A stretch of DNA of 63,792 nt, counting the filler, from Octopus bimaculoides (taxonomy: Eukaryota): NCBI RefSeq assembly GCF_001194135.2. It is 8 parts of 7 records of this genome, joined end to end, with 100 filler letters (N's around TTAATTAATTAA, not from the genome) between each part and the next. Parts side by side here need not be neighbours in the genome. Positions count along the whole stretch, not along the records: positions 23,398 to 45,698 come from NC_068992.1; 7 more parts are not named here. One strand, written 5' to 3'. The notes below the pieces were generated by a model, which saw only the letters and a program-made list of their open reading frames with translations, had not been told where the DNA came from and did not search any database. Shown here piece after piece: positions 23,398-38,078 of the stretch. How positions within the stretch are numbered: position 1 is the first letter of the stretch; every line of letters begins with the position of its first letter. Made by a program: the position numbers and the translations under genes.

Positions 23398-25890
23398 CGA
23401 ATGCGAGATGTTGAATGGTTCCGATAGATGGCCATTCACCTGTATGACCGAGCAGATGCCGCTGTATAAAGCAGCTATCCACCCGTGGAAGACCTGACCA
23501 AAGCCAGCTGCCAGGTATCGATGGTCGACCCTATCGAAGGCTTTAGACTGATCTAAATTTATCAAAGCCCCACCCGCGCCAGCTTCGTTACCCACCCTCT
23601 CTATGATGTAAGGCATGAAATGGAGGTTGTCGTGGATAGACCTGGTCGGCACGGCGCATGTCAGCGCCTTGCTGATCAGTTTGCCCACGACAAGCGCCAA
23701 TCTTCAACTCTGCATTGAGCAGAGTGATGGGCCTAAAGTTCCCTATAATGTCCCCGTTGTTTGGGTCCTTTCTTAGCAAAGCCACCACTCCTCAACAAAC
23801 AAAAGCAGGAATTTTCTCGTTTTGTTGCCAGTTGCACTAGACGTTTGCCAAGACACCCACAAACAAGTCTGGCATTGACATATAAAGCTCGTAAGGCAGA
23901 CCATCCAAACCCGGCGATCTACCTCTCGTGCAGCCTTTCATCGCTTCCTGTACTTCCCAGGCAGATATGGGTCCTTCGCAGCACTCGGCTTCGCTGGTCG
24001 AGAGTTGCGGCAGGCTGTCTAGGTACACACCGAAGTCTGTTCCGTCGTCCATCCTACTGTTCATCCCGAACAATTGAGCAAAGTGCTGCTGAAAGGCCGC
24101 GCACATCTGCTTCGGTTCCGAAATCTCGCAGTTGTTCTGGTCCACCAAAGACCGAATGGTTGCTCTGTTGCCACGCTTCGCCTTAGTCCCCTCCCCGCTT
24201 ACTGAAAGTGCTTTAGCTCTGACAACGCAGCCTTCATGCTTGGCATCAAAGTGTTGGTCGAGGGCCAACTTCGCTGCTAACACGTCGGTTGCGATGCCTG
24301 TCCTAAGAGCCTCGTCTAGTTTATTAACTAAATCCCGCTCTGTTTTCTTACGTTCTACAGCTAGAGCCTTACTAAACCTAATTGATTCTGCTCTAATTGC
24401 CTGCTTCAGGGCGAACCACCAGTTGTTATTGATAATTGCCCTGGTTAAAGCCCTCTTAACTAATAAACTAATCCGGTCTCTGTAGGCTTTGCACGCCATT
24501 AACAACGCGTTTAGCTTCCAGTAACCGGGACCTTGTCTATGGAGCCTATCTAAGTCGACCGTACAGATCACGAATTTGTGGTCCGTGTAGCCGACTATGT
24601 TGAATTGTGGACACCCTATGCTATCCTTATCCACTGGCCTACAGAAAATTCTATCTAAGTACGATCTAGACGACCCGATGCGATTAGTCCAAGTCCACAT
24701 TGGCACATTCGGGTTGTCTAGTCGATACTTGTCGGACAGCTGAAAGCATCTGAGCAGGTTGGCAAGGCTCTTGCATCCCCCTTTCCTATCAGATGCTCCC
24801 GCACCCACCCTATCGATACGTTCGCCTAAGACAGCCTTCCAATCCCCAACTAGCACTAAAGTGCGAGAAGTACCCAGGAAAACCTCCAGACGTTTGAAAT
24901 AATCCGACTGCCCTGCTCCTGTCGGAGCTTAGGCAGCCAGTAGTCTAAAGGCAGCGCCGTCACTACTATCGACGTCCAGGACCACCAACTTACCTTCTGG
25001 ATCCAGGAAGACTGCCCTTATTTTCAAGTCCAGGCCTTTCCGAAATAGCACCGCAGTACCCCCACCGCCCGCTTCCGGCCGACACGGAGATAGGAAAATC
25101 TCGTATCCGCCAAAAAGGGCTGCGAGTTCCTGTGGGTTGGAGAGCCTCATTTCGCTTATGGCTGCTACATCTACACTGTAAGACCTCAGGTCGTTCAACA
25201 GGTGACCTTGTTTCCAAGGCGACCCGAGGCCTCTCACATTTATGCTTCCGATTCTGAGAATTACCATGTTTTTTTCAAAAAAGGAAAAAATTAGAGGAGA
25301 AAAGGCTCTACTTACTGTTTTCTGGTGGGGTGGCTCCCCTATGTTTCCGTGTGGGTGTTTCCACTAAATTCCGATAAAGTCTTTGGGAGAAACCTCTCCC
25401 TAGCGACCCAACATCATTCGGAAACTTTTCTTTTATTTTATTGTAGTTTTCTTCAGTGATCTTTAGTGTGAGTATGTGTGCTGGTGGTGCGTTGTGTAGG
25501 GGTATAATGAAGTTTGTGATATTTGCATTTGTACAGTTTTTAAAAAAGTTTAATAAGTGTTCATTTTTGGTGTTGATGGCTGTTACGTTTGTGGTGTGTG
25601 TGATTGTTGGTGTTTGCGGTGGAGAAGGTGTTGCTATTTGTTGTGAGTGTGTTTTGTTGTTGTTGCTGATGATGTTGGGAAGCTCACCTTTTTCGCGCCT
25701 CCCCTCTTTGTCAATTGTTTCTTTTGTCTTTCTTCTCTGTTTTTTCGTTGGTGGTACAGTGTGCCACTTCCCTTTCTCACTATCAGTGCTCGCACAATCC
25801 GAGCTGATCTGATCTGGAAAGGGAATGTTTGTAGGATCTGGCGAAAATTCTTTTGCAATTTCTGTTGTTGTTGGTTCTGTTATTTTCTTA
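23398..25890 (-). mobile_element. Tx1/L1-clade LINE: ORF1 C-terminal part and disrupted ORF2 (APE endonuclease + RT)
   Basis: ORF2 starts at 25267 (IGSINVRGL, APE motif I), then GDWKAVL, SYLDRIF, TDHKFV, SPGLDGLP, NFRPITLLN, LDQSKAFDRVDH. Premature stop at 24929 and frameshifts. The upstream low-complexity basic ORF ends at 25308. Confidence 0.9.
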
Positions 25891-26547: not shown

Positions 26548-27927
26548 CTAGAAAATGAAATAGCAATATGAATAAGGAACAAGAACGAAGGACAATGCTA
26601 AATACACATACAAGATGAGGACAAATATCCGTCAAATGTAAATAATGTAAATAATTCCTCATCTCTTAAATATAGAACTATAATTCCATTCTATAGTAAA
26701 AGAGATATCCCAGAACTGACAGCAATTTAGTTTTGGTTTTTGTACATACACTAAAAATATGAGCTGTGTGCATGTAAGAGGAATGGCGTCTGGCCATAGA
26801 AAATCTGCATCAATAAACTCCGTCTGACCCATGCAAGCATGAAAAAGTGGACATTAAAACAATGATGTATATGTGCGTGTGCATGTATGTTTGTGTGAGT
26901 GAGATTCTTATTTGCCAAGTGTTTGCTGGTATGTAAACAATGGCTCCCTTTAAATGAGGCTCAGGTTTTGGTTAGAGTTACATTAGTGTTTCGAGTTTAG
27001 GATTAAGGTTTATTTTAGGGTTTAAGGGATTGGGGTGGTCAGAGATGAAAATCTGTTGCTGTACTGAAATTTCTTTGCACATGCATACAGCTCATATTTT
27101 TAGTCAATCTGTTCTAACTACATCAAATATGCTAGCACCCATTTTACTATAAAGGTTTTTATGCAGTAGGCATCCCTGGGTGGTATTTACATTTGATCAT
27201 TCTTTCAAGTTTTTAAGACCCCTTACAAAAAGAAATAAATAAACCTTCAGTCCTTTGATTGTTATTAGATTTTGCAAAGGAAGACAAATAAGACTGAAAC
27301 ATGTCTAAAGTTGTCCCTGTGCTGCTAAACATTCAGACTCACCATGCAGTTCATAATCAATTGTTAAGATTCCAGGGTTACCTCCTCTATATTCCTTGAT
27401 CAGAATTATTCATTCCATGATTTGATTTCATTACTATAGTAATTAATCTAATTAAAATTAAATCAAGTATGATGTACCCACTTTACTTTTATGGGTAGGA
27501 TTTCCACAAACAAACACCTGAATACTCTGGGGGAATATTGTTAACACAGTATAGTAATAACTGTGATGGTACTGTACTACAATGTGACTGAAGGTTGTTT
27601 TAACCATTCCACTTCACTTTCATCAGAATATCCTAATCTTGATATGCACTCCCATCATTGTCTTCTTCGTCACAACCATCATCGCCTCCACCACCATCAT
27701 TGCTGCCATGCATCTCCAACCCCACCACCACTACCATCATCATTTTTACATATGTTTTTCCATGATTGCAATAGGTGAGACAGGTCATCTCCATCTGCAG
27801 TTCTTTTGTCAACATGATGATAATGGTGATGATAGTGATGAAATAAAAGGGCTAGAAACTAATCAATAGATATTGATCTATTGGTATTTTGTATTTTTTA
27901 TTGTATTTTTCCCCCTTTTCTTTTTAG

Positions 27928-28062
27928 TACCATTGAAGCAATGAATGGTAATATTAGCTTCCAAGATGCATTAAGAACCAGGTTAAATATTATTAAACCA
28001 AGTAAAAATATTCTTAAACAGTTTCTAGAAACTCATCCACCAAAATTAACCGATGGAGTCAA
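27928..28062 (+). CDS. PSPH: Phosphoserine phosphatase, internal exon (first exon seen)
   Basis: TTTTTAG acceptor, TIEAMNGNISFQDALRTRLNIIKPSK...PPKLTDGVK, GTAAGT donor; 135 nt, phases match the next exon. Confidence 0.9.
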
Positions 28063-28129
28063 GTAAGTTATTTTGTTTGTTTGATTTGCTTTTTTCTTTT
28101 TTTTTGCATTAATTTGTCTTTAATTATCA

Positions 28130-28497: not shown

Positions 28498-28720
28498 ACT
28501 GGCAACGGCCACGCTCAAAATGGTGCACCCCATGTGCCACCCGCACAAGAGCCAGTCTAGGAGCACTGGCAACGATCTCGCTCGAAAATCCCACGAAGGC
28601 CAGCTAGGCGGCACTGGCAACAGCCACGCTCAAAATGGTGTATTTCATGTGTCACCCGCACAAGAGCCAGTCCAGGGGCACTGGCAACGATCTCGCTCGA
28701 AAATCCTACGACGGCCCATC
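28498..28720. repeat. Two tandem ~112-bp units (ACTGGCAACGGCCACGCTCAAAATGGTG...)
   Basis: The same unit type occurs inside the RTE-tail element at 33960-34200. Confidence 0.7.
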
Positions 28721-29440: not shown

Positions 29441-30231
29441 ATCCTTATTTCTATTAGCACGACCATTAATGTGCTGTACAAAATGCTTCATGGCATTTCT
29501 TCTAGTTTTTTTACATTCTTAAGTTCAAATCCAGACAAGATCAACTTCGCTTTTTCATCTTTTTGGAAACTGATAACATAAAGACTCAGTGGAATACAGT
29601 AGACAATCAGCTACTTCCCTCGACCTAAAAGAAATTGCTGGCCTTGTGCCAAGATTTGAAATGGTTATTATTATTATTATTAGTAGTAGTAGTAGTAGTA
29701 GTAACAATTTTGTCTTTCATCCTTTCAGGGTTGATGACATAAGTACTATCATCATCAATTAATTTCCATTTTCCATGCTAGCATGGGTTGGATGATTTGA
29801 CAGGAGCTGGCACGCTGGAGAGCTGCACCAGGCTACAATTGTCTATGTTGGCATGGTTTCTATAGCTGAATACCCTTCCTAACACTAACCACTTTACAGA
29901 GTGCATTGGGTGCTCTTTACATGGCACAAGCCTCCATGTGAAGCCTGATGTATGTATCAGCAATATGATCCTGAAGCTCTTCCTCCATTGTCCAAATTTC
30001 AATTTCACAGACGAATGCTCTCCACACACACCATCTGTGCAATTAATCAATACACATTTCTAATTCTAGTAAATTAAACAAATTTGGTAATTAAAAAATG
30101 AAAACATTTTTTTCAACCAGTTTGCCATTAGACATAAAATTATTTTCTTCCAAACCATTACAATTTTGTTTAGTAAAGAAATAACATAATATAGCATTTT
30201 ACTGTATGTTTTACCCCTTTTGGTTTCACAG

Positions 30232-30377
30232 AGACCTGATACTTATACTACAGGAAAAAAACATTGATGTCTATCTTATTTCGGGAGGATTCCGTACCAT
30301 CATTGAGACTGTTGCCAAAGAAGTGAACATTCCAAAAGATCATATATTTGCAAACAGGTTGCAGTTTGATCAAGATG
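30232..30377 (+). CDS. PSPH: Phosphoserine phosphatase exon
   Basis: CAG acceptor, DLILILQEKNIDVYLISGGFRTIIETVAKEVNIPKDHIFANRLQFDQDG (HAD motif II, SGGF), GTGAGT donor; 146 nt. Confidence 0.95.
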
Positions 30378-30496
30378 GTGAGTATATTATCCATTCAACA
30401 TTGGTTTTTTTAATGGGAACTATATCTGTGGTAGGATGCTCTTCTTGTCACCAACTCTTATCTGTTTATCATGTAAGGGATTTTTTTTTATTCTAC

Positions 30497-30707
30497 ATGT
30501 AGTTAGGGTTTCAAACCACCATCTGAAGACTGCTAACCATCTGCAATCTTGTTATTAAATCATAAGCTGGCACTTCAATATAACAATCACCTGCAGCTTT
30601 TTTTACAACTCCATATTATTGGAACCATTTTTAAATAGATTAATTAATTCTGCAAAAGACATCACAAACCATTTTGCTTCTTCTTTCACTTTCTTCCTCA
30701 AAACATT
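30497..30707 (-). repeat. Inverted copy of PSPH terminal exon and 3'UTR (32852-33059)
   Basis: Reverse complement aligns almost base-for-base with 32852-33059, with about a dozen substitutions and one small indel by eye. Confidence 0.95.
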
Positions 30708-30822
30708 TTTTCACAGTGTACAGTTACAGGTCATAACATCTACAAGGAATGCAAACATCATAATACTGTTTTGCTCAGCTGGTAACAAGTGAAGCAATGA
30801 AATGTCACATTCACACACATAT

Positions 30823-30854
<32 letters not shown>

Positions 30855-31147
30855 TCATGTATACATATTTTGAAGCACACATCTGTGTATGCCAGGTCAG
30901 CTAACCAACACCAACTTCAGCACAATGGTATTCCATTAAGCACTTCTCAGTGCATGTGTAAGTGGCATCTCTACACACTATACATCCAGACACTCAAGGC
31001 AACGGACTGTTTCATATTCAAACTTGTAACCATCCAGCCATAGAAACTATGCCAAAGGAGAGAGCAGAATATAACACAGTCTTCTGTCGGATCCCGTCAA
31101 ACTGTCCAACTGATGCCAGCATGGAAAACCGATGATAATGTCAGGCT

Positions 31148-31275
31148 TCTTTCCATATACCAAATCTACTCACAAGGCTTTGGTTGGCCCAGGACGATCA
31201 TAGAAGACACTTGCCCAAAGTACCACACAATAAGACTGAACTCAAGCCATTTTTAACCACACTGCTATGCCTGCA
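31148..31275 (-). mobile_element. CORE-like SINE, family D
   Basis: ACCAAATCTACTCACAAGGCTTTGGTTGGCCC...AGAAGACACTTGCCCAA. Confidence 0.65.
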
Positions 31276-31414
31276 TCTGAACCACTTTGTTAATTTACAT
31301 GAATTATTATGATAATTACTCTAACGTTTCTTTAAACCACTTGACATTATATTATTTATCACATCATCATCATCATTTAACAGCAGTTTTAATTCACCAT
31401 TTTTATATTTTCAG

Positions 31415-31563
31415 GTAATTATGTTAGTTTTGATAAAGCAGAGCTCACTGCCAAGAGTGGTGGTAAAGGACAAGTAATTCAACTTTTGAAAGATAAGCAT
31501 AATTATAGCAATTTAATTATGATCGGTGATGGTGCAACTGACATGGAAGCTTGTCCTCCTGCT
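31415..31563 (+). CDS. PSPH: Phosphoserine phosphatase exon
   Basis: TTTTCAG acceptor, GNYVSFDKAELTAKSGGKGQVIQLLKDKHNYSNLIMIGDGATDMEACPPA (HAD motifs III and IV, GDGATD), GTAAGT donor; 149 nt. Confidence 0.95.
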
Positions 31564-31638
31564 GTAAGTAATCTAATATTTCTATGCACATTGAAATAAC
31601 AGCTTGGATTGCAATCAAATGTGCAACATAACTATTTT

Positions 31639-31681
31639 GTGTGCTGATGAAAGGAAATAACCCGGAAATCGCGATACACAT
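31639..31681 (+). ncRNA. Candidate minimal type I hammerhead ribozyme in a PSPH intron
   Basis: GTGTG-CTGATGA-AAGGAAATAACCCG-GAAA-TCGCGA-TA-CACAT; intact core boxes, palindromic helix III, weak stem II. Confidence 0.45.
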
Positions 31682-32827
31682 TGTTTTGAGCTGAGTGAGG
31701 ATGCTAGATTCCCTTGTTCGAAAATTTAAGGACACAGATCATGTGGTATAGCCAGCTGGAGACGATGTCTCCTGGGGCTAAATTATAGCAACATTCATCC
31801 TAAACCAGGACTGCCATGTTATGTTGGCAAACAATCTTTACTCCAAAGTACTGTTGCTGAATATCTCGTGTTGTGAGATTTAAAAATAGTAATTTTCTAA
31901 AAACTATTTACAATTAACTGTAGTCGAGGTTTATCACACATTTTCACATGTATTTTTGTGTTAGCTGAGTTGAACTAGCTACTATGATCACTGTACAAAA
32001 ACACTGATTCTGCTACTGGGTCCAGTCTTCATTGTGATATGGTGGCTTGTATGCCCCAATGGCCCTGACAGCTATGCTAGCAGAAGACATGTTCCTGCTA
32101 GAGCCTGTCATGTTGAACAGGTCAAAGGTTAGATGCCAGAATGATGTGGATCACCTCTTCCCAGAAGTAAAAATAGGTTCCCATAGGGCCAATACTTCTA
32201 CCTAGAAAAAAAGCAAAGTTACAGAGGCATTGATAACTGAAAAACCAAAATAAAACTGGGAGAGGAAGGCCTTTCCTCAGGGATAAATATGAGGTGGTGC
32301 AGCAAAATCTGAAAGAAAACTGCAGGAAAAAAAAAGCAATAAGTCAACTGGAGAGAAGCAGAAAAGGCAGTCTGTAATTGAAAACAGTGGAGACAAATCA
32401 TTAATGATCCATGGTCTATAGAGAGCGAAAGACTTAAGTAATATACATAGTTTGAATTTTGATAATATATTATCAGGGTTACTTCCCCTACGTTTTTTTA
32501 TCAGAATTATTCATTCCATGATTTGTTTTCATTACTAAAGTAATCAATCTAATTAAAATTTTTCAACTTATGATATCAAGTACCCACTTCACTTTCATGG
32601 GTGGTTTTTCCACAAGCAAACACCTGAATACTCTGGGGAAGTATTGTTATTAACACAGTACAGTAATAACTGTGATGGTACTGTACTACAAAGTGACTGA
32701 GAGTTATTTTAACCATTTAAATCAATGAAGTAGTGTTGTGGCTGAATGCTCTTCCTACAACCAGCCATTATTTATAAAGTCAAATAGTGGTTAATATTTT
32801 TCTTTTCTTTTCTTTTTTCTCTCCTAG

Positions 32828-32929
32828 GATGCTTTTATTGGTTTTGGAGGTAATGTTGTGAGGAAGAAAGTGAAGGAAGAAGCAAAATGGTTTGTGATGT
32901 CTTTTACAGAATTAATTAATCTATTTTAA
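32828..32929 (+). CDS. PSPH: Phosphoserine phosphatase terminal exon
   Basis: CCTAG acceptor, DAFIGFGGNVVRKKVKEEAKWFVMSFTELINLF*; 102 nt. Confidence 0.95.
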   Translation, partial: DAFIGFGGNVVRKKVKEEAKWFVMSFTELINLF

Positions 32930-33824
32930 AATGGTTCCAATAATGTGGAGTTGTAAAAAAAGCTGCAAGTGACTGACATATTGAAGTGCCAGCCTATGAT
33001 TTAATAACAAGATTGTAAATCCTCAGTCTTCAGATGGTGGTTTGAAACCCTAACTACATATTTACATGAGACTATCTGAGAGCTTTTTTAACAAAGTCCA
33101 ATAAGTAAGAATCTATTCTCACCAGAAACCCTTGGAATGAGATAAAACCCTGCCACATATCATTAAAAATAAGATTCAACACACAATGTTTGATGTTGTT
33201 TTTGCTTGTTTTGTTTTTTAAACTAGAAGCAGAATCTCAGAAAAAGTGATTGAAAGGTATTAATCCATTTACCAATGATATCAGTAGCATAAATAGCTAC
33301 AAAAGTCAGTATATTTAGTGGTCAGTTAGCTCCAGTAAAACAGACACTGCTATTGGCCTTCCCTCCATTTTAATATCTAACATCTGCATCATTATCATCT
33401 TGATGTGCTAAGACCAAATGTGTTACACTGTCACAGGATTAGTTGAAAGGAGAGTAAGAGAAAAAGAGGAAGAGAGAAGTGTTAATGATGTTAGGTAAGG
33501 GAAAGTAATAGTTATTAAAAAGTGAGTTAAAAGGTGAGTTAGTTAAAAGAGAGCTACAAATACAATGTTTAACAGAGGAGTGATGTTCTGGTAGTGAGGT
33601 TAAAAATATGCAGATAGAGAGGGGAGGCAGTTATATTAAGAGGGAGAAGCAAATAATGTGAGAGATGCCATGTCAGCTGATGCATTATGCTGTAACATGT
33701 TTAGTGAAAGTGAGAGGTGAATTAAATGGTTAAAAAGTTTGTTGAAATATGTGGTAGAGAGAAATGTAAAGTGGTTAGCAGAGGGAAATTTTAAACATCA
33801 TATATTATTGTCATCATCATCATC

Positions 33825-34240
33825 ATCGTTTAACGTCCGCTTTCCATGCTAGCATGGGTTGGACGATTTGATTGAGGACTGGCAAACCAGATAGCTGCAC
33901 CAGGCTCCAATCTGATCTGGCAGAGTTTCTACAGCTGGATGCCCTTCCTAATACCAACCACTCCTCTTTTACGTGCCACCGGCACAAGGGCCAGTCTGGT
34001 GGTACTGGCAACAGCCACACTCAAATGGTGTTTTTTACGTGCCACCTGCATAGGAGTCAGTCCAGCGACACTGGCAACGACCTCACTCAAATGTTTTGTT
34101 CACATGCCAGTCAGGCGACGCTGGTAAAGATCATGCTCAAATGGTGCTTTTTACATGCCATTGGCACGGAAGCCAGACAGCTGCTCTGGCAGTGATCCCA
34201 CTTGGATGGTGCTGTTAGCGCTCCACAGGTGCCAGTCATT
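33825..34240 (-). mobile_element. RTE 3'-tail element (5'-truncated LINE or tail-sharing SINE)
   Basis: Reverse complement of the 3' end at 39468-39647 (GGAAGGGCATCCAGCTGTAGAAAC...GGAAAGCGGACGTTAAACGATGATGAT). Further copies at about 29045, 29750, 34930, 35150, 35525, 35880, 42300, 42640 and 43275. Confidence 0.8.
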
Positions 34241-35297
34241 GAATTTAGTTCAATTTCAATTGTGACTATCAAAATAACATTTTAATACTCAATTTTTTAC
34301 ATCTGTCAATCTATTTATCGATCTATCCACATTGACAAATACATCGATGGGTGGACAGTGGAAAGAAAGCTTATATTAGGTATAATGATAAACTTATCAT
34401 AAATAGGACTATAGATTTTCCAATGAAAGTGTAATATGTTAGTGAAATAGCTACGGATGTTATTTGTAAAACAGTACACCGCCACCACCACCCAATTGAC
34501 ACTTTTAAACAGTCTTAATTATGGAACAATAATGAAGAAGAGACAATGTATTTAACAATGAAAAGGTTTTAGAAAGTTCTGTGAATTTATGCATCAAAAA
34601 TAGAAACATGGTGTTTCCATGGATCTCACATGTATGAAAACATTTTCACTACATTCAAAACAAACTCCTAGGAAATCTTTTATCTTTTACTTGTTTCAGT
34701 CATTAGACTGCAGACATGCTGGGGCAGCACTGCCTTGAAGAATGGATTAACTCCAGTATTTATTTTTGGCTTTTTAAGCTTGGTTCTTATTCAGTTGATC
34801 TGTTTTACCAAACCACTAAGTTACAGGGACATAAACACACCAACATTGGTTTTCAAGTGGAGGTGGAGACACATAGACACACACACTTACACATATATGC
34901 AGACATTAAACAATGATGATGATATTGAATGTAAAAAGCACCCATTACATTCGTGGAGTGGAAGGGTATCCAGCTGTAGAAACATTGCCAGATCAGATTG
35001 GAGCCTGGTGCAGCCACTGGCTTTCTAAATCTCAGTCAAACCGTCCATTTATAAGGTCAGAGTACAAATCCTACTTCAACATCTTTAAGTTGTCTTTTAT
35101 GACATGCAGAGGTAACATTGGTTCTATTATTTGGCCTGCTGGTCCACTCACAGTTTAACTTCCGCTTTCCATGCTGGCATGGGTTAGACAGTTTAATCAG
35201 GGAGGCAGCACCAGGCTCCAAACTGATTTGGCAAGGTTTCCTACAGCTGGAAGCCCTTCCTAATGGCAACCACTGCGAAAATGTACTGAGTGCTTTT

Positions 35298-35360
35298 TAC
35301 ATGCCACCGGCACGGGAGCCAGTCAGGCGGCACTGAGTGCTCCCGTGCCGGTGGCATGTA
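35298..35360. repeat. Perfect 22-bp inverted repeat hairpin at the truncated end of an RTE-tail copy
   Basis: TACATGCCACCGGCACGGGAGC (35298-35319) pairs with GCTCCCGTGCCGGTGGCATGTA (35339-35360). Confidence 0.9.
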
Positions 35361-36889
35361 TAAATAAACTAAAATTATTTAAATACACAGGGCAGTCATT
35401 AACGACTTTGTCTATACAATTTCATTATGGGCAGAAAAAGTGTAGTTTATCAAAGCATCAAAACTGTCTGGTTAAAATTAAAACTATTTAATTTTAATCA
35501 GACAATTATCACCATTATTATTGTTTTAACATTTATGTTTCCATGCTTGCATAGGCCAAACAGAATTCATTGAAGTAGAGTTCTTATAGCTGGATGCCCT
35601 TCTTGTTGCCAATGCTCACTTGTTGCCTCACAAAGTGACGTTTTCCCATGGCCAGACACAATTTCATGGAGGGTTGGAAATGAACACCAATCATGTGGTA
35701 AGGCTTATTTACAATGATCACATAATGTCAAGACAAGGAGACACAAATACACACTTGTGTGCATTGTCTCCTTGTCTCAATAACACGCACTAAATGTAAA
35801 TAAACATCACCATTCTATAAGCAATATTGTTTATTTATAATCATGAAAGCATGTCTAGCTGTTTGAAATCATCATCATCATTGTTGAACGTCCACTTTCC
35901 ATGCTGGCATGAGTTGGACGGTTTCACTGAAAATTGGTGAGCCAGAGTGGGGGGACTGCACCAGCTTCCAATCTGATTTGGCAAGGTTTCTACAGCTGGA
36001 TGCCCTTCCTAACACCAACCACTCTGAGAGTGTAGTGGGTGTTTTTTACGTGCCACCAGCATGGATGCCGTTGACCTGACATTGTCATCAGCCATGACTA
36101 CAGTCTCGCTTGGCTTGACAGGTCAATACAAGCATGGTATATAGCCTAGAGTCTTGGTCACCTGTCACTGCCTCCATGATGCCCAACACTCAAGTGGTGT
36201 TTTTTGTTTGCCAATGGCATGGGTGCCAGTCAGACAGCACTGGCATCAGCCACAACTACAATTTCACTTGGTTTGACAGGTCTTCACAAAGACTAAGGAA
36301 AATATTATCTTGTTTGGGAGCAGGTGAAGATAGGTGACAGGAAGAGCATCCAGTTAAATTCCATCTGACCTGTGCAAGCATAGAAAAGAAAATATGAAAA
36401 CAATGAGAGTGATGAAAGACTTTACAACTGTTTAATATAATTAATTTTAATTATCTTATCTGCAGTTCATCATAATATTTCAGTTAAATGAACTTTAAAA
36501 AAATAAGCAGAAAGTAAACACACAAGTTGAAATGTAAAAGATAGTTTGAAAACATAACAAATATTTTATTAATGATGTTCAAACATTCCTTCATCGAACA
36601 AACATACATGAAACAGAAATGGATAAAAATAATAATTTTTATTATAACACGAATGTTTATGCATCCAAATGCACTTTGAAGATGTAACATGTACAATTAT
36701 ATGTTACTAGTGAACTAATATTCTATATACATTTTATATATGAATTCAATATCTGGTTATTATTACTATTATTGTCATTACAAAATAACAGCTTATTAAA
36801 ACCACATAAAGAGTGAATCACGTGAATTCTAATAGCACTGAGAAACTGTATTTTAAAAATATATTTGATGTAATAATCCTTTCTGCTAT

Positions 36890-37868: not shown

Positions 37869-38078
37869 TCAAGACTGAGATTGGCCATAAGATTCAGCTA
37901 GTTTATAAAACCAACGCGACAGAGCAGCTTGTACACGAATCATCAACAGGAAGGTAATTAAACCAGTTAAAAAGGTGACTCCAGACATTGCAGCAGCAAA
38001 TATAAACCGAGGAGCAAATATCTTCCAAACCATTAAATGTCTTCTATGAAGTGCTGCTGCTGTCATACTGCTAAGTAA
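37869..38078 (-). CDS. PIGO: GPI ethanolamine phosphate transferase 3, terminal exon
   Basis: TTGCAG acceptor, LLSSMTAAALHRRHLMVWKIFAPRFIF...*; the HRRHLMVWKIFAPRF motif is characteristic of PIG-O; 210 nt. Confidence 0.92.
   Translation of the reverse strand, partial: LLSSMTAAALHRRHLMVWKIFAPRFIFAAAMSGVTFLTGLITFLLMIRVQAALSRWFYKLAESYGQSQS

Follow-up and report, generated by a model that had tools for sequence, protein, structure and literature searches.

An inverted copy of the last PSPH exon in an upstream intron of the same gene in Octopus bimaculoides, and the exon-intron duplex predicted from it

The PSPH locus and its inverted repeat

The window analysed here (63,792 nucleotides of Octopus bimaculoides DNA, to which all positions refer unless another locus is named) contains a piece that matches CM046612.1 of GCA_001194135.2 with 100% identity and carries the locus of PSPH, the gene for phosphoserine phosphatase (XP_014781791). 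The gene model proposed earlier was confirmed, with exons at approximately 30230-30377, 31415-31563 and 32828-32929 and a TAA stop codon at 32927-32929; the first coding exon, which carries the DxDST motif, is absent from the piece. A protein search with a 176-aa PSPH query retrieved cephalopod matches; with a shorter query of 125 aa no cephalopod was among the matches. The PSPH protein cluster has no member from transcript assemblies. Exact-product look-up of two window ORFs spanning the intronic copy gave no match, and neither Rfam (gathering threshold) nor ARAGORN identified an RNA family or a tRNA in the piece. The features relevant here are the following.

~30230-30377, plus strand: PSPH exon directly 5′ of the intron hosting copy 1
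30378-31414: PSPH intron hosting copy 1
30481-30489, plus strand: run of nine T, with 7 unrelated nt between it and the copy; this flank is kept in three species
30497-30707, minus strand: copy 1, an inverted copy of the last-exon/3′ UTR segment, antisense to the exon in the plus-strand pre-mRNA
31186-31187, plus strand: site of copy 2 in O. sinensis and O. vulgaris; copy 2 is absent in O. bimaculoides
31415-31563, plus strand: PSPH exon of 149 nt coding for the GDGATD motif, within the loop of the predicted duplex
32828-32929, plus strand: last coding exon of PSPH, translated as DAFIGFGGNVVRKKVKEEAKWFVMSFTELINLF and a stop
32852-33059, plus strand: source arm, comprising the last 78 nt of the CDS including the stop codon (32852-32929) and the first 130 nt of the 3′ UTR
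32906, plus strand: A32906, which opens the ACA codon of Thr217, is flanked by U (-1) and C (+1) and lies opposite C in the predicted duplex
32927-32929, plus strand: stop codon TAA of PSPH
33024-33059, plus strand: block of 36 nt that pairs perfectly with 30497-30532, a candidate gene-conversion tract
33162-33167, plus strand: poly(A) signal ATTAAA followed by a GU/U-rich stretch, kept in 3/3 Octopus species

The position of the ATTAAA signal places the 3′ end of the mRNA near 33185, past the end of the repeat. The piece also contains a SINE family of about 180 nt with approximately 10 occurrences, which forms inverted pairs in the PSPH pre-mRNA too, and a LINE that retains remnants of endonuclease and reverse transcriptase.

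The original prediction had described 30497-30707 as the reverse complement of 32852-33059 with about 90% identity. Alignment of the two arms gave 194 identical columns out of 211 (92%), the rest being 14 mismatches and one 3-nt indel, and a spacer of 2144 nt lies between them. The gene model also bears out that the source consists of 78 coding nucleotides with the stop codon and approximately 130 nt of the 3′ UTR, and that the copy arose by local duplication, in inverted orientation, of the last exon and 3′ UTR of the gene itself, within the same pre-mRNA. A blastn comparison of the arm with the 22-kb piece (E = 4e-83) found two copies only, and the arms are distinct from the SINE family, in line with the proposal that no dispersed repeat is involved. 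The loci fetched from three other species match at orthologous positions only. A repeat-family origin was rejected on the basis of these two comparisons.

Both ends of the copy are sharp. No similarity was found past the arm ends, since 162/500 and 183/500 shuffled controls reach the observed flank-alignment score; the weak similarity that had been thought to continue past the T-run is thus no better than shuffled sequence. An 8-mer, TCATGTAA, was spotted by eye in both flanks and is taken as chance. A target-site duplication of at least 6 nt was not found in the flanks, in which the longest common word is 5 nt long and lies away from the junctions, and no clear case of microhomology was found at the junctions.

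Age of the copy and evolution of its arms

Orthologous copies were identified in O. sinensis (L003, 29250-29462) and in O. vulgaris (L004, 32187-32399). Both are located at the same intron position and in collinear alignments, and no copy is present at the Argonauta hians locus. Orthologs in other species had been named as a check on the copy and on the candidate codon; the copy was recovered in two of the species compared and is missing from the third, and the A at 32906 was found in neither O. sinensis nor O. vulgaris.

Inverted duplications may be artefacts in long-read assemblies, and a chimeric fold-back read could in principle have produced one here. The arms differ by 8%, and the copy is found at the orthologous site, with species-specific substitutions, in three genomes assembled independently of one another (GCA_001194135.2, GCA_006345805.1 and GCA_951406725.2), which leaves an assembly artefact with a next to negligible probability. 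Since the copy occupies the same site in three species, it is a real inverted duplication older than their split, and neither an artefact nor a retrocopy nor a member of a repeat family. Only one fixed difference between exon and copy, at 32858, is common to all species, which suggests that the duplication took place just before speciation.

Another inverted duplicate is present in the same intron of O. sinensis and O. vulgaris (copy 2). It is a re-inverted duplicate of the sequence corresponding to 30598 to approximately 30866 of the window, i.e., half of copy 1 together with neighbouring intron sequence. It is younger than copy 1, and has 97% identity and a spacer of about 640 nt. That the sister lineage underwent a further inverted duplication of comparable size in the same intron suggests a recurrent local mutational process. 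As judged from its sequence and position, the nearer copy 2 should compete in these two species for the coding-complementary half of copy 1.

These comparisons also bear on the proposal that the copy is a retroposed, 5′-truncated 3′ end of an edited PSPH mRNA, with the T-run as remnant of the poly(A) tail and the A-to-G differences as old edits. The LINE remnants in the piece and the T9 run located 7 nt from the copy end would fit such an origin, as would the differences that are A-to-G in sense orientation, although these make up 3/14 of the arm differences and are not in excess. Polarisation of the changes contradicts it: 32906 is a G-to-A change of the exon, those at 32968 and 33018 entered the O. 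bimaculoides copy once the species had split, and the sole difference at the time of duplication is G-to-T. In addition, the copy ends at 33059, 103 nt before the conserved ATTAAA at 33162. The 7 nt between copy and T-run bear no relation to the source, the run itself belongs to a conserved flank, there is no target-site duplication, and in the sister lineage it was intronic sequence that the second event copied. The intron-loss test for retrocopies found that the copied segment lies within one exon and spans no splice junction. We regard retroposition as highly improbable.

The copy arm evolves at the rate of the intron or faster. Between species it differs at 22/211 and 20/211 positions (10.4 and 9.5%), compared with 162/2013 positions (approximately 8%) in the pooled intron of O. 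bimaculoides and O. sinensis (Fisher p = 0.24 and 0.28), and the 3′ UTR part of the source arm shows a divergence of 8.5%. Conservation of the copy arm, as the test for an editing-complementary sequence (ECS), is therefore not above the intron background, and each species tolerates 15-16 mismatches between its arms.

Within a species the two arms are more alike than expected from independent decay. Mismatches sum to 31 (30) within species, 37 (35) between orthologues and 40 (39) across species; six (five) sites with double hits are found in the same species and none across species. In these tests, a small sample that covers three species, two of them very close relatives, at about 210 sites and for the 3′ UTR lacks an outgroup, the arms share an excess of change within species (sign test p = 0.016 (0.031); bootstrap p = 0.0035 (0.007)). 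At 33030 and 33044, which both lie in the perfectly paired block 33024-33059, the two O. bimaculoides arms are alike, and neither arm of the other species shares their state. On the aligned sequences, this likeness could reflect gene conversion or compensatory change, including selection for pairing.

The predicted duplex and the candidate site A32906

According to the folding model the two arms of the PSPH pre-mRNA can pair over about 210 bp and leave exon 31415-31563 in the loop, as had been predicted. The minimum free energy (MFE) fold of a 2971-nt pre-mRNA segment keeps the whole duplex, with 194/194 inter-arm pairs, and cofolding of the two arms alone yields -302 kcal/mol versus -76 ± 5 kcal/mol for shuffled controls. 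The source arm contains 75 adenosines, 70 of which are paired with U in the MFE fold and five unpaired. Nine differences between the arms are transitions; three of these result in G-U wobbles and six in A-C mismatches, and the A is on the exon arm at 32906, 32968 and 33018. The placement of A32906 in an ACA codon, opposite C and with U at -1, was correctly described in the original prediction.

The inverted complementarity flanks internal exon 31415-31563, with the downstream arm in exon and UTR rather than in an intron. Skipping of this exon is absent among the annotated isoforms, and its removal would shift the frame to an end in FDQDGCFYWFWR and a stop, with loss of the GDGATD motif. The suggestion that the copy is a splicing element is not borne out by the annotated isoforms, none of which skips this exon.

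A at 32906 is present in the O. bimaculoides exon only; 7/8 aligned sequences (every copy and the exons of the other two species) carry G, coding for Ala. By this alignment A32906 is a derived G-to-A change in the O. bimaculoides exon (Ala217Thr). The stop codon is likewise a change in O. bimaculoides, from AAA to TAA. The copy thus did not lose the stop codon: the intronic copies retain AAA and the O. bimaculoides exon gained an earlier stop. In O. sinensis and O. vulgaris the reading frame runs nine codons past the O. bimaculoides stop, and this ancestral 9-codon tail (NGSNNVEL and a stop) is still open in O. bimaculoides. As read from these alignments, the intronic copy preserves the ancestral exon as a fossil, and the C-terminus of O. 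bimaculoides PSPH (Thr217, minus nine residues) is derived.

The copy had been interpreted as a gene-specific element that makes A32906 a candidate for Thr-to-Ala recoding. In its full form this reading takes the copy as a functional, self-made ECS that is kept paired by selection and aims ADAR at A32906, and that may also modulate splicing of 31415-31563. It would account for a thermodynamically dominant duplex with A32906 opposite C and U at -1, in a coleoid host with very high ADAR activity (PMC9068888), and for the retention of the copy in three species, the concordant sites 33030 and 33044, and the six double hits, all of which are of the same-species type. However, the copy arm is not conserved above the intron and has 15-16 mismatches to its partner in each species. 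The candidate site is an A in O. bimaculoides only, at a residue that varies freely, and in O. sinensis and O. vulgaris the closer and better matching copy 2 (97%) should take the coding-complementary half of copy 1. A near-perfect duplex as long as 210 bp tends to be edited promiscuously rather than site-selectively. A splicing role is further opposed by the frameshift and the loss of GDGATD on exon skipping, and by annotated isoforms without skipping. Together these points make a selected editing or splicing element unlikely.

Flanking inverted repeats promote circularisation, and hairpins of inverted gene fragments give rise to endo-siRNAs in flies and to young miRNA genes in plants. A long and stable predicted duplex whose arms flank an internal exon at a distance of 2144 nt might accordingly feed another dsRNA pathway, either back-splicing to a circRNA or exon skipping, or dicing to small RNAs that damp PSPH expression. 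The downstream arm is exon and 3′ UTR rather than intron, though, and the strongest pairing expected in O. sinensis and O. vulgaris joins copy 1 to copy 2, wholly upstream of the exon. Since the arm is not conserved and the annotated isoforms are ordinary, we consider such a role quite improbable.

A bolder reading takes the copy as a newborn editing guide that acts as a backup at the RNA level. ADAR would restore Ala217 and, by converting UAA to UGG, allow readthrough into the 9-codon tail, with pairing kept by compensation or gene conversion. The copy retains the ancestral bases and thereby presents C opposite the derived A32906, and both adenosines of the derived UAA stop are base-paired in the predicted duplex. 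We give this model a small chance only. If true, it would provide the datable birth of an ECS and of harm-permitting editing in cis.

Likely origin, comparison with known systems and meaning

On balance we favour, with some confidence, a real, lineage-specific and mostly neutral inverted duplication, in which the duplex is an incidental by-product and not a selected editing or splicing element. In the ancestor of O. bimaculoides and O. vulgaris/O. sinensis, shortly before their split, about 210 bp of the terminal exon of PSPH would have been copied, comprising the C-terminal coding part and the proximal 3′ UTR, and inserted, reversed, into an intron located two exons further upstream. Most likely the DNA itself was copied, through fold-back repair or local template switching. 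The intronic copy would then have decayed about as fast as neutral intron, with short patches of gene conversion between the arms perhaps arising now and then, and the O. bimaculoides exon would later have gained Ala217Thr and the premature stop that removes nine residues. The retention of the copy in three species is an observation that counts against neutrality, as does the excess likeness of the two arms within a species if it stems from selection for pairing.

Under this preferred explanation the duplex probably serves ADAR as an incidental target of clustered editing. Should the intron still be unspliced when the last exon has been transcribed, clustered and promiscuous editing of many adenosines would be expected on both arms; A32906, opposite C, would be a favoured site, and its editing would restore the ancestral Ala. 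Quick co-transcriptional splicing of the host intron could also keep the duplex from ever forming. The O. bimaculoides recoding table in the supplement of PMC9989829 has no PSPH, PIGO or endosulfine among the rows listed, and the supplements of PMC8382921 contain no entry for any of the three. A literature search found no paper joining octopus with phosphoserine phosphatase.

In classical ECS systems such as the Q/R and R/G sites of GRIA2, HTR2C and Drosophila syt1, an intron pairs with an exon and A-C at the target is favourable. Their duplexes are short, imperfect and conserved along with the edited site, and since the pairing partner is intronic, editing must come before splicing. The PSPH copy resembles them in being intronic, pairing with an exon and placing A-C at the candidate site; unlike them, its duplex is approximately 210 bp long, 92% paired and no better conserved than the intron background, with a species-specific candidate site.

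Human CLDN9/CLDN6 and TOR1B/TOR1A are closer in architecture: there the ECS is a reverse-oriented paralogous exon, and 10-19 clustered A-to-I sites are found on both arms (Gabay et al. 2022, PMC8897444). As in these pairs, a coding exon of PSPH faces an inverted coding duplicate in one transcript, with which it would form a long stable dsRNA. The partner in the human pairs is an entire neighbouring paralogous gene reached via an extended 3′ UTR, whereas that of PSPH is a 210-bp fragment of its own last exon in an upstream intron; the editing is documented for CLDN and TOR1, and for PSPH the duplex is predicted.

The ‘ubiquitous’ class of editing in cephalopods is attributed to inverted SINE pairs in introns and 3′ UTRs (PMC9068888), and reverse-complementary ADAR substrates have been defined by at least 80% identity over at least 50 nt within ±2 kb (Zhang et al., PMC9989829 / 10.1101/2020.01.19.911685). 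The PSPH arms exceed the identity and length thresholds, and their spacing of 2.1-2.25 kb is just beyond ±2 kb. Unlike inverted SINE or Alu pairs, they consist of unique gene sequence, and one arm is coding.

Restorative or harm-permitting editing sites (Jiang & Zhang 2019, PMC6881472) offer a further parallel, since A32906 derives from an ancestral G and predicted editing would give back the ancestral residue. The difference is that residue 217 is variable: among 117 homologues it is Q in 30, E in 13, A in 11, D in 11, K in 10 and S in eight. Such variability argues against harm from the G-to-A change, which on this comparison was probably neutral and left nothing to be ‘permitted’. As a recoding candidate A32906 is not supported, being a derived, species-specific change at a variable residue.

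Intrachromosomal inverted duplications, such as palindrome arms and templated insertions at break repair, undergo gene conversion. The PSPH copy is like them in being sharp-edged and local, in lacking a poly(A) tail and a target-site duplication, in having a second event nearby in the sister lineage, and in the signal of concerted evolution between its arms. It differs in its very small scale (approximately 210 bp) and in having no clear junction microhomology, and a mechanism of this kind is putative for it.

If the duplex is edited, the locus would be a clean natural experiment on the origin of exon-targeting dsRNA, with a dated event, the ancestral sequence kept in the copy, a lineage with the competing copy 2 and a copy-free outgroup. 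It would then test whether a new long duplex is edited promiscuously or site-selectively in a coleoid, and whether a G-to-A change is restored in RNA. If it is unedited, even an exon-intron duplex of 210 bp can be inert, presumably since the intron is spliced first. Edited or not, the copy serves as a fossil indicating that the C-terminus of O. bimaculoides PSPH is derived.

The inverted pair and its surroundings

The PSPH region (29500-33500) is 100% identical to chromosome CM046612.1 of the O. bimaculoides assembly GCA_001194135.2. PSPH (XP_014781791, 223 aa) was mapped by tblastn with PSPH homologues and by direct translation; its first coding exon is outside the ~22-kb part of the window ("the piece") that holds the rest of the gene.

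Features of the PSPH piece (window coordinates)
~27927-28063, 30230-30377, 31415-31563, 32828-32929, plus strand: PSPH exons
30497-30707, inverted, in intron 30378-31414: copy 1 (copy arm)
32852-33059: source (exon arm)
41825-45371, minus strand: PIGO (GPI ethanolamine phosphate transferase 3, XP_014781790), convergent neighbour of PSPH
23398-25267, minus strand: non-LTR retrotransposon fragment, ORFs with endonuclease/exonuclease/phosphatase domain (PF03372) and reverse-transcriptase-like motifs
27373-27608, 32474-32717: 244-nt direct repeat, 85% identity
29053-29227, 29748-29931, 31085-31139, 33804-33963, 34929-35047, 35148-35321, 35868-36060, 39467-39647, 42284-42475, 42632-42817, 43278-43417: SINE copies

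The arms of the inverted pair are identical in 194 of 211 columns of the local alignment and differ by 14 mismatches and one 3-nt indel; they are separated by 2144 nt and contain a perfect 36-nt block at the 3′UTR end. Repeat search, local alignment and blastn (E = 4e-83 within the 22-kb piece) all recovered the pair, which forms a two-copy family. With exon coordinates from tblastn and translation, the original prediction proved exact in its description of an inverted PSPH last-exon and 3′UTR copy: the source comprises 78 nt of coding sequence including the stop codon and 130 nt of 3′UTR, A32906 lies in an ACA codon with U at −1, and the T9 run is present at 30481-30489. The weak similarity proposed to continue past this run was not recovered, since alignments of the flanks on both sides scored no better than shuffled sequence; the arm ends are thus sharp. 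A cluster of six changes within ~10 nt (30537-30543, corresponding to 33016-33024) beside the indel is confined to the O. bimaculoides copy arm and looks like one complex mutational event, not independent substitutions.

The numerous further repeats of the piece are copies of a ~180-nt SINE (about ten, both orientations); after some of these copies come tandem units of 66-115 nt (28498-28716, 33967-34093). Inverted SINE pairs within PSPH introns (e.g., 29758-29812 and 31085-31139) are further potential dsRNA. The copies of the direct repeat lie in two different PSPH introns, each a few hundred nucleotides upstream of an exon, and both also occur, at 83-86%, in O. sinensis and O. vulgaris; the repeat may be an intragenic duplication of older date or an element of low copy number. 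The retrotransposon fragment lies in a ~50% GC block and is cut off by the start of the piece. PIGO includes one very large exon with a 658-aa ORF (43395-45371, minus strand), and its coding sequence ends near 37869, ~4.9 kb from the PSPH stop. A run of N at ~38940-39470 marks an assembly gap flanked by a retroelement-like ORF fragment (38709-38938).

Inheritance and origin of the copy

The 3′ halves of PSPH in O. sinensis (locus L003), O. vulgaris (L004) and Argonauta hians (L002) were reached via the PIGO orthologues. The search for the copy in other octopuses, which had been proposed as a check, found it in O. sinensis and O. vulgaris at the orthologous intron position, within a collinear intron alignment; its flanks, T-run included, are conserved across the three octopuses. 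The A. hians locus contains the three exons at ~75% identity and no inverted copy. Judged from these alignments, the copy is inherited and not an assembly artefact. Among six arms from three species and two partial sequences of a second duplicate (copy 2), only one exon-versus-copy difference is common to all (32858, G versus T), which places the duplication only shortly before the split of O. bimaculoides from O. vulgaris/sinensis. In A. hians, a direct 98.8% duplicate of the last-exon region lies 6.8 kb away (L002 18932-19100, 25726-25894) and there is a 454-aa fused gene call, which suggests that PSPH was recently duplicated in tandem.

The copies preserve earlier states of the exon. A32906 is derived, all other sequences (every copy, and the exon in O. 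sinensis and in O. vulgaris) having G (Ala), and the O. bimaculoides stop codon (TAA, 32927) arose from AAA. Nine further codons are read in O. sinensis and O. vulgaris (…FKNGSNNMEV*), the Argonauta protein is also longer, and the old tail is still open in frame in O. bimaculoides (32927-32956, NGSNNVEL*). Loss of the stop codon by the copy was rejected, since polarisation shows that the exon gained it; the polarised C-terminal differences agree with the annotated proteins. The exon arm of O. bimaculoides has lost the three nucleotides of the indel, and all four coding differences between this species and the other two in the 78-nt stretch change the protein (T/A, I/T, L/V, stop/K).

A retroposed mRNA 3′ end, with the T-run as poly(A) remnant and edits recorded as A-to-G changes, had been offered as an alternative. 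This origin was rejected: the copy ends at 33059, whereas the likely poly(A) site is marked by a conserved ATTAAA at 33162 and a GU-rich downstream element; no target-site duplication was found; the T-run is part of the conserved flank, and unrelated bases lie between it and the copy; and the A-to-G differences either postdate speciation or occurred on the exon.

Evolution of the arms

Mismatches were summed in a four-point comparison of O. bimaculoides with O. sinensis (O. vulgaris in brackets), giving 31 (30) for within-species paralogues, 37 (35) for orthologues and 40 (39) for cross-species paralogues. Six (five) sites changed in both arms of one species and none in opposite arms of different species (sign test p = 0.016 (0.031); bootstrap p = 0.0035 (0.007)). 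Two sites are strictly concordant transversions, with ~0.14 expected by chance: 33030 (T,T versus A,A) and 33044 (G,G versus C,C), both within the perfect 36-nt block. By these sequence comparisons the arms show concerted evolution. Compensatory selection may lie behind the concordant changes; the preferred reading is gene conversion over a short tract, since the concordant sites are neighbours and every species retains 15-16 mismatches elsewhere.

Divergence between O. bimaculoides and O. sinensis/O. vulgaris
Copy arm: 10.4%/9.5%
The two intron segments that border the copy: 4.3-8.5%
Large intron 31564-32827: 8.2%/7.5%
Other PSPH exons: 2.0-2.7%
Source arm, 3′UTR part: 8.5%

The copy had been proposed as a gene-specific editing or splicing element, and its divergence does not differ significantly from that of pooled intron (Fisher p = 0.24 and 0.28). 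Among the differences between the O. bimaculoides arms, nine are transitions (three giving G-U wobbles, six A-C mismatches) and 3/14 are A-to-G. The copy evolves like intron, its rate and difference types giving no sign of selection on its sequence, and the arm differences hold no record of editing.

In O. sinensis and O. vulgaris, copy 2 (L003 28291-28520; L004 31217-31445), which is absent from O. bimaculoides, is a re-inverted duplicate of the equivalent of 30598 to ~30866, containing the coding-complementary half of copy 1 and adjacent intron. Its insertion point corresponds to 31186/31187, ~640 nt from its source, with which it shares 97% identity. A CA/TA microsatellite lies just downstream of copy 1 (30806-30863), and a SINE is inserted there in these two species; the template of copy 2 was an intron version without this SINE. 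The event suggests a recurrent local mutational process. The predicted hairpin between copies 1 and 2, being nearer than the exon and transcribed earlier, should compete with the exon for copy 1, which argues against a conserved exon-pairing role.

Predicted duplex, editing and splicing

The proposed ~210-bp duplex within one pre-mRNA is borne out by folding: the cofolding energy of the arms is −302 kcal/mol, compared with −76 ± 5 when one arm is shuffled and ~−63 when the two are folded separately, and all 194 inter-arm pairs are retained in the minimum-free-energy structure of 30230-33200. Copy and exon can thus, by prediction, form a long duplex, in which 70 of the 75 adenosines in the exon arm are paired with U, and A32906, A32968 and A33018 lie opposite C. 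So long and regular a predicted duplex would be expected to undergo promiscuous editing, fitting the "ubiquitous" class of cephalopod intron and 3′UTR editing (PMC9068888). It belongs to the known dsRNAs formed by nearby reverse complements, including duplexes of exons with inverted paralogues; in the human pairs CLDN9/CLDN6 and TOR1B/TOR1A, exons paired with reverse-oriented paralogous exons have 10-19 edited sites (PMC8897444), editing being observed there and predicted here. Editing would require the 1037-nt host intron to stay unspliced until a further ~1.65 kb had been transcribed. The Thr/Ala position of the A32906 codon is among the most variable of the C-terminal helix in 117 homologues (Q, E, A, D, K, S…), and recoding would likely have little effect; putative editing there would be restorative in the sense of Jiang and Zhang (PMC6881472), probably of a neutral change. 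Skipping of the looped 149-nt exon (31415-31563), also proposed, found no counterpart among the annotated isoforms of three species, none of which alters the PSPH 3′ half; by translation, it would cause a frameshift (…FDQDGCFYWFWR*) and loss of the GDGATD motif.

In PSPH, part of an exon was duplicated in inverted orientation into an intron; the duplication is real and dated, and the copy is most probably a neutral by-product of this local process and an incidental putative ADAR substrate. The locus is of value as a natural experiment that public RNA-seq could test directly.
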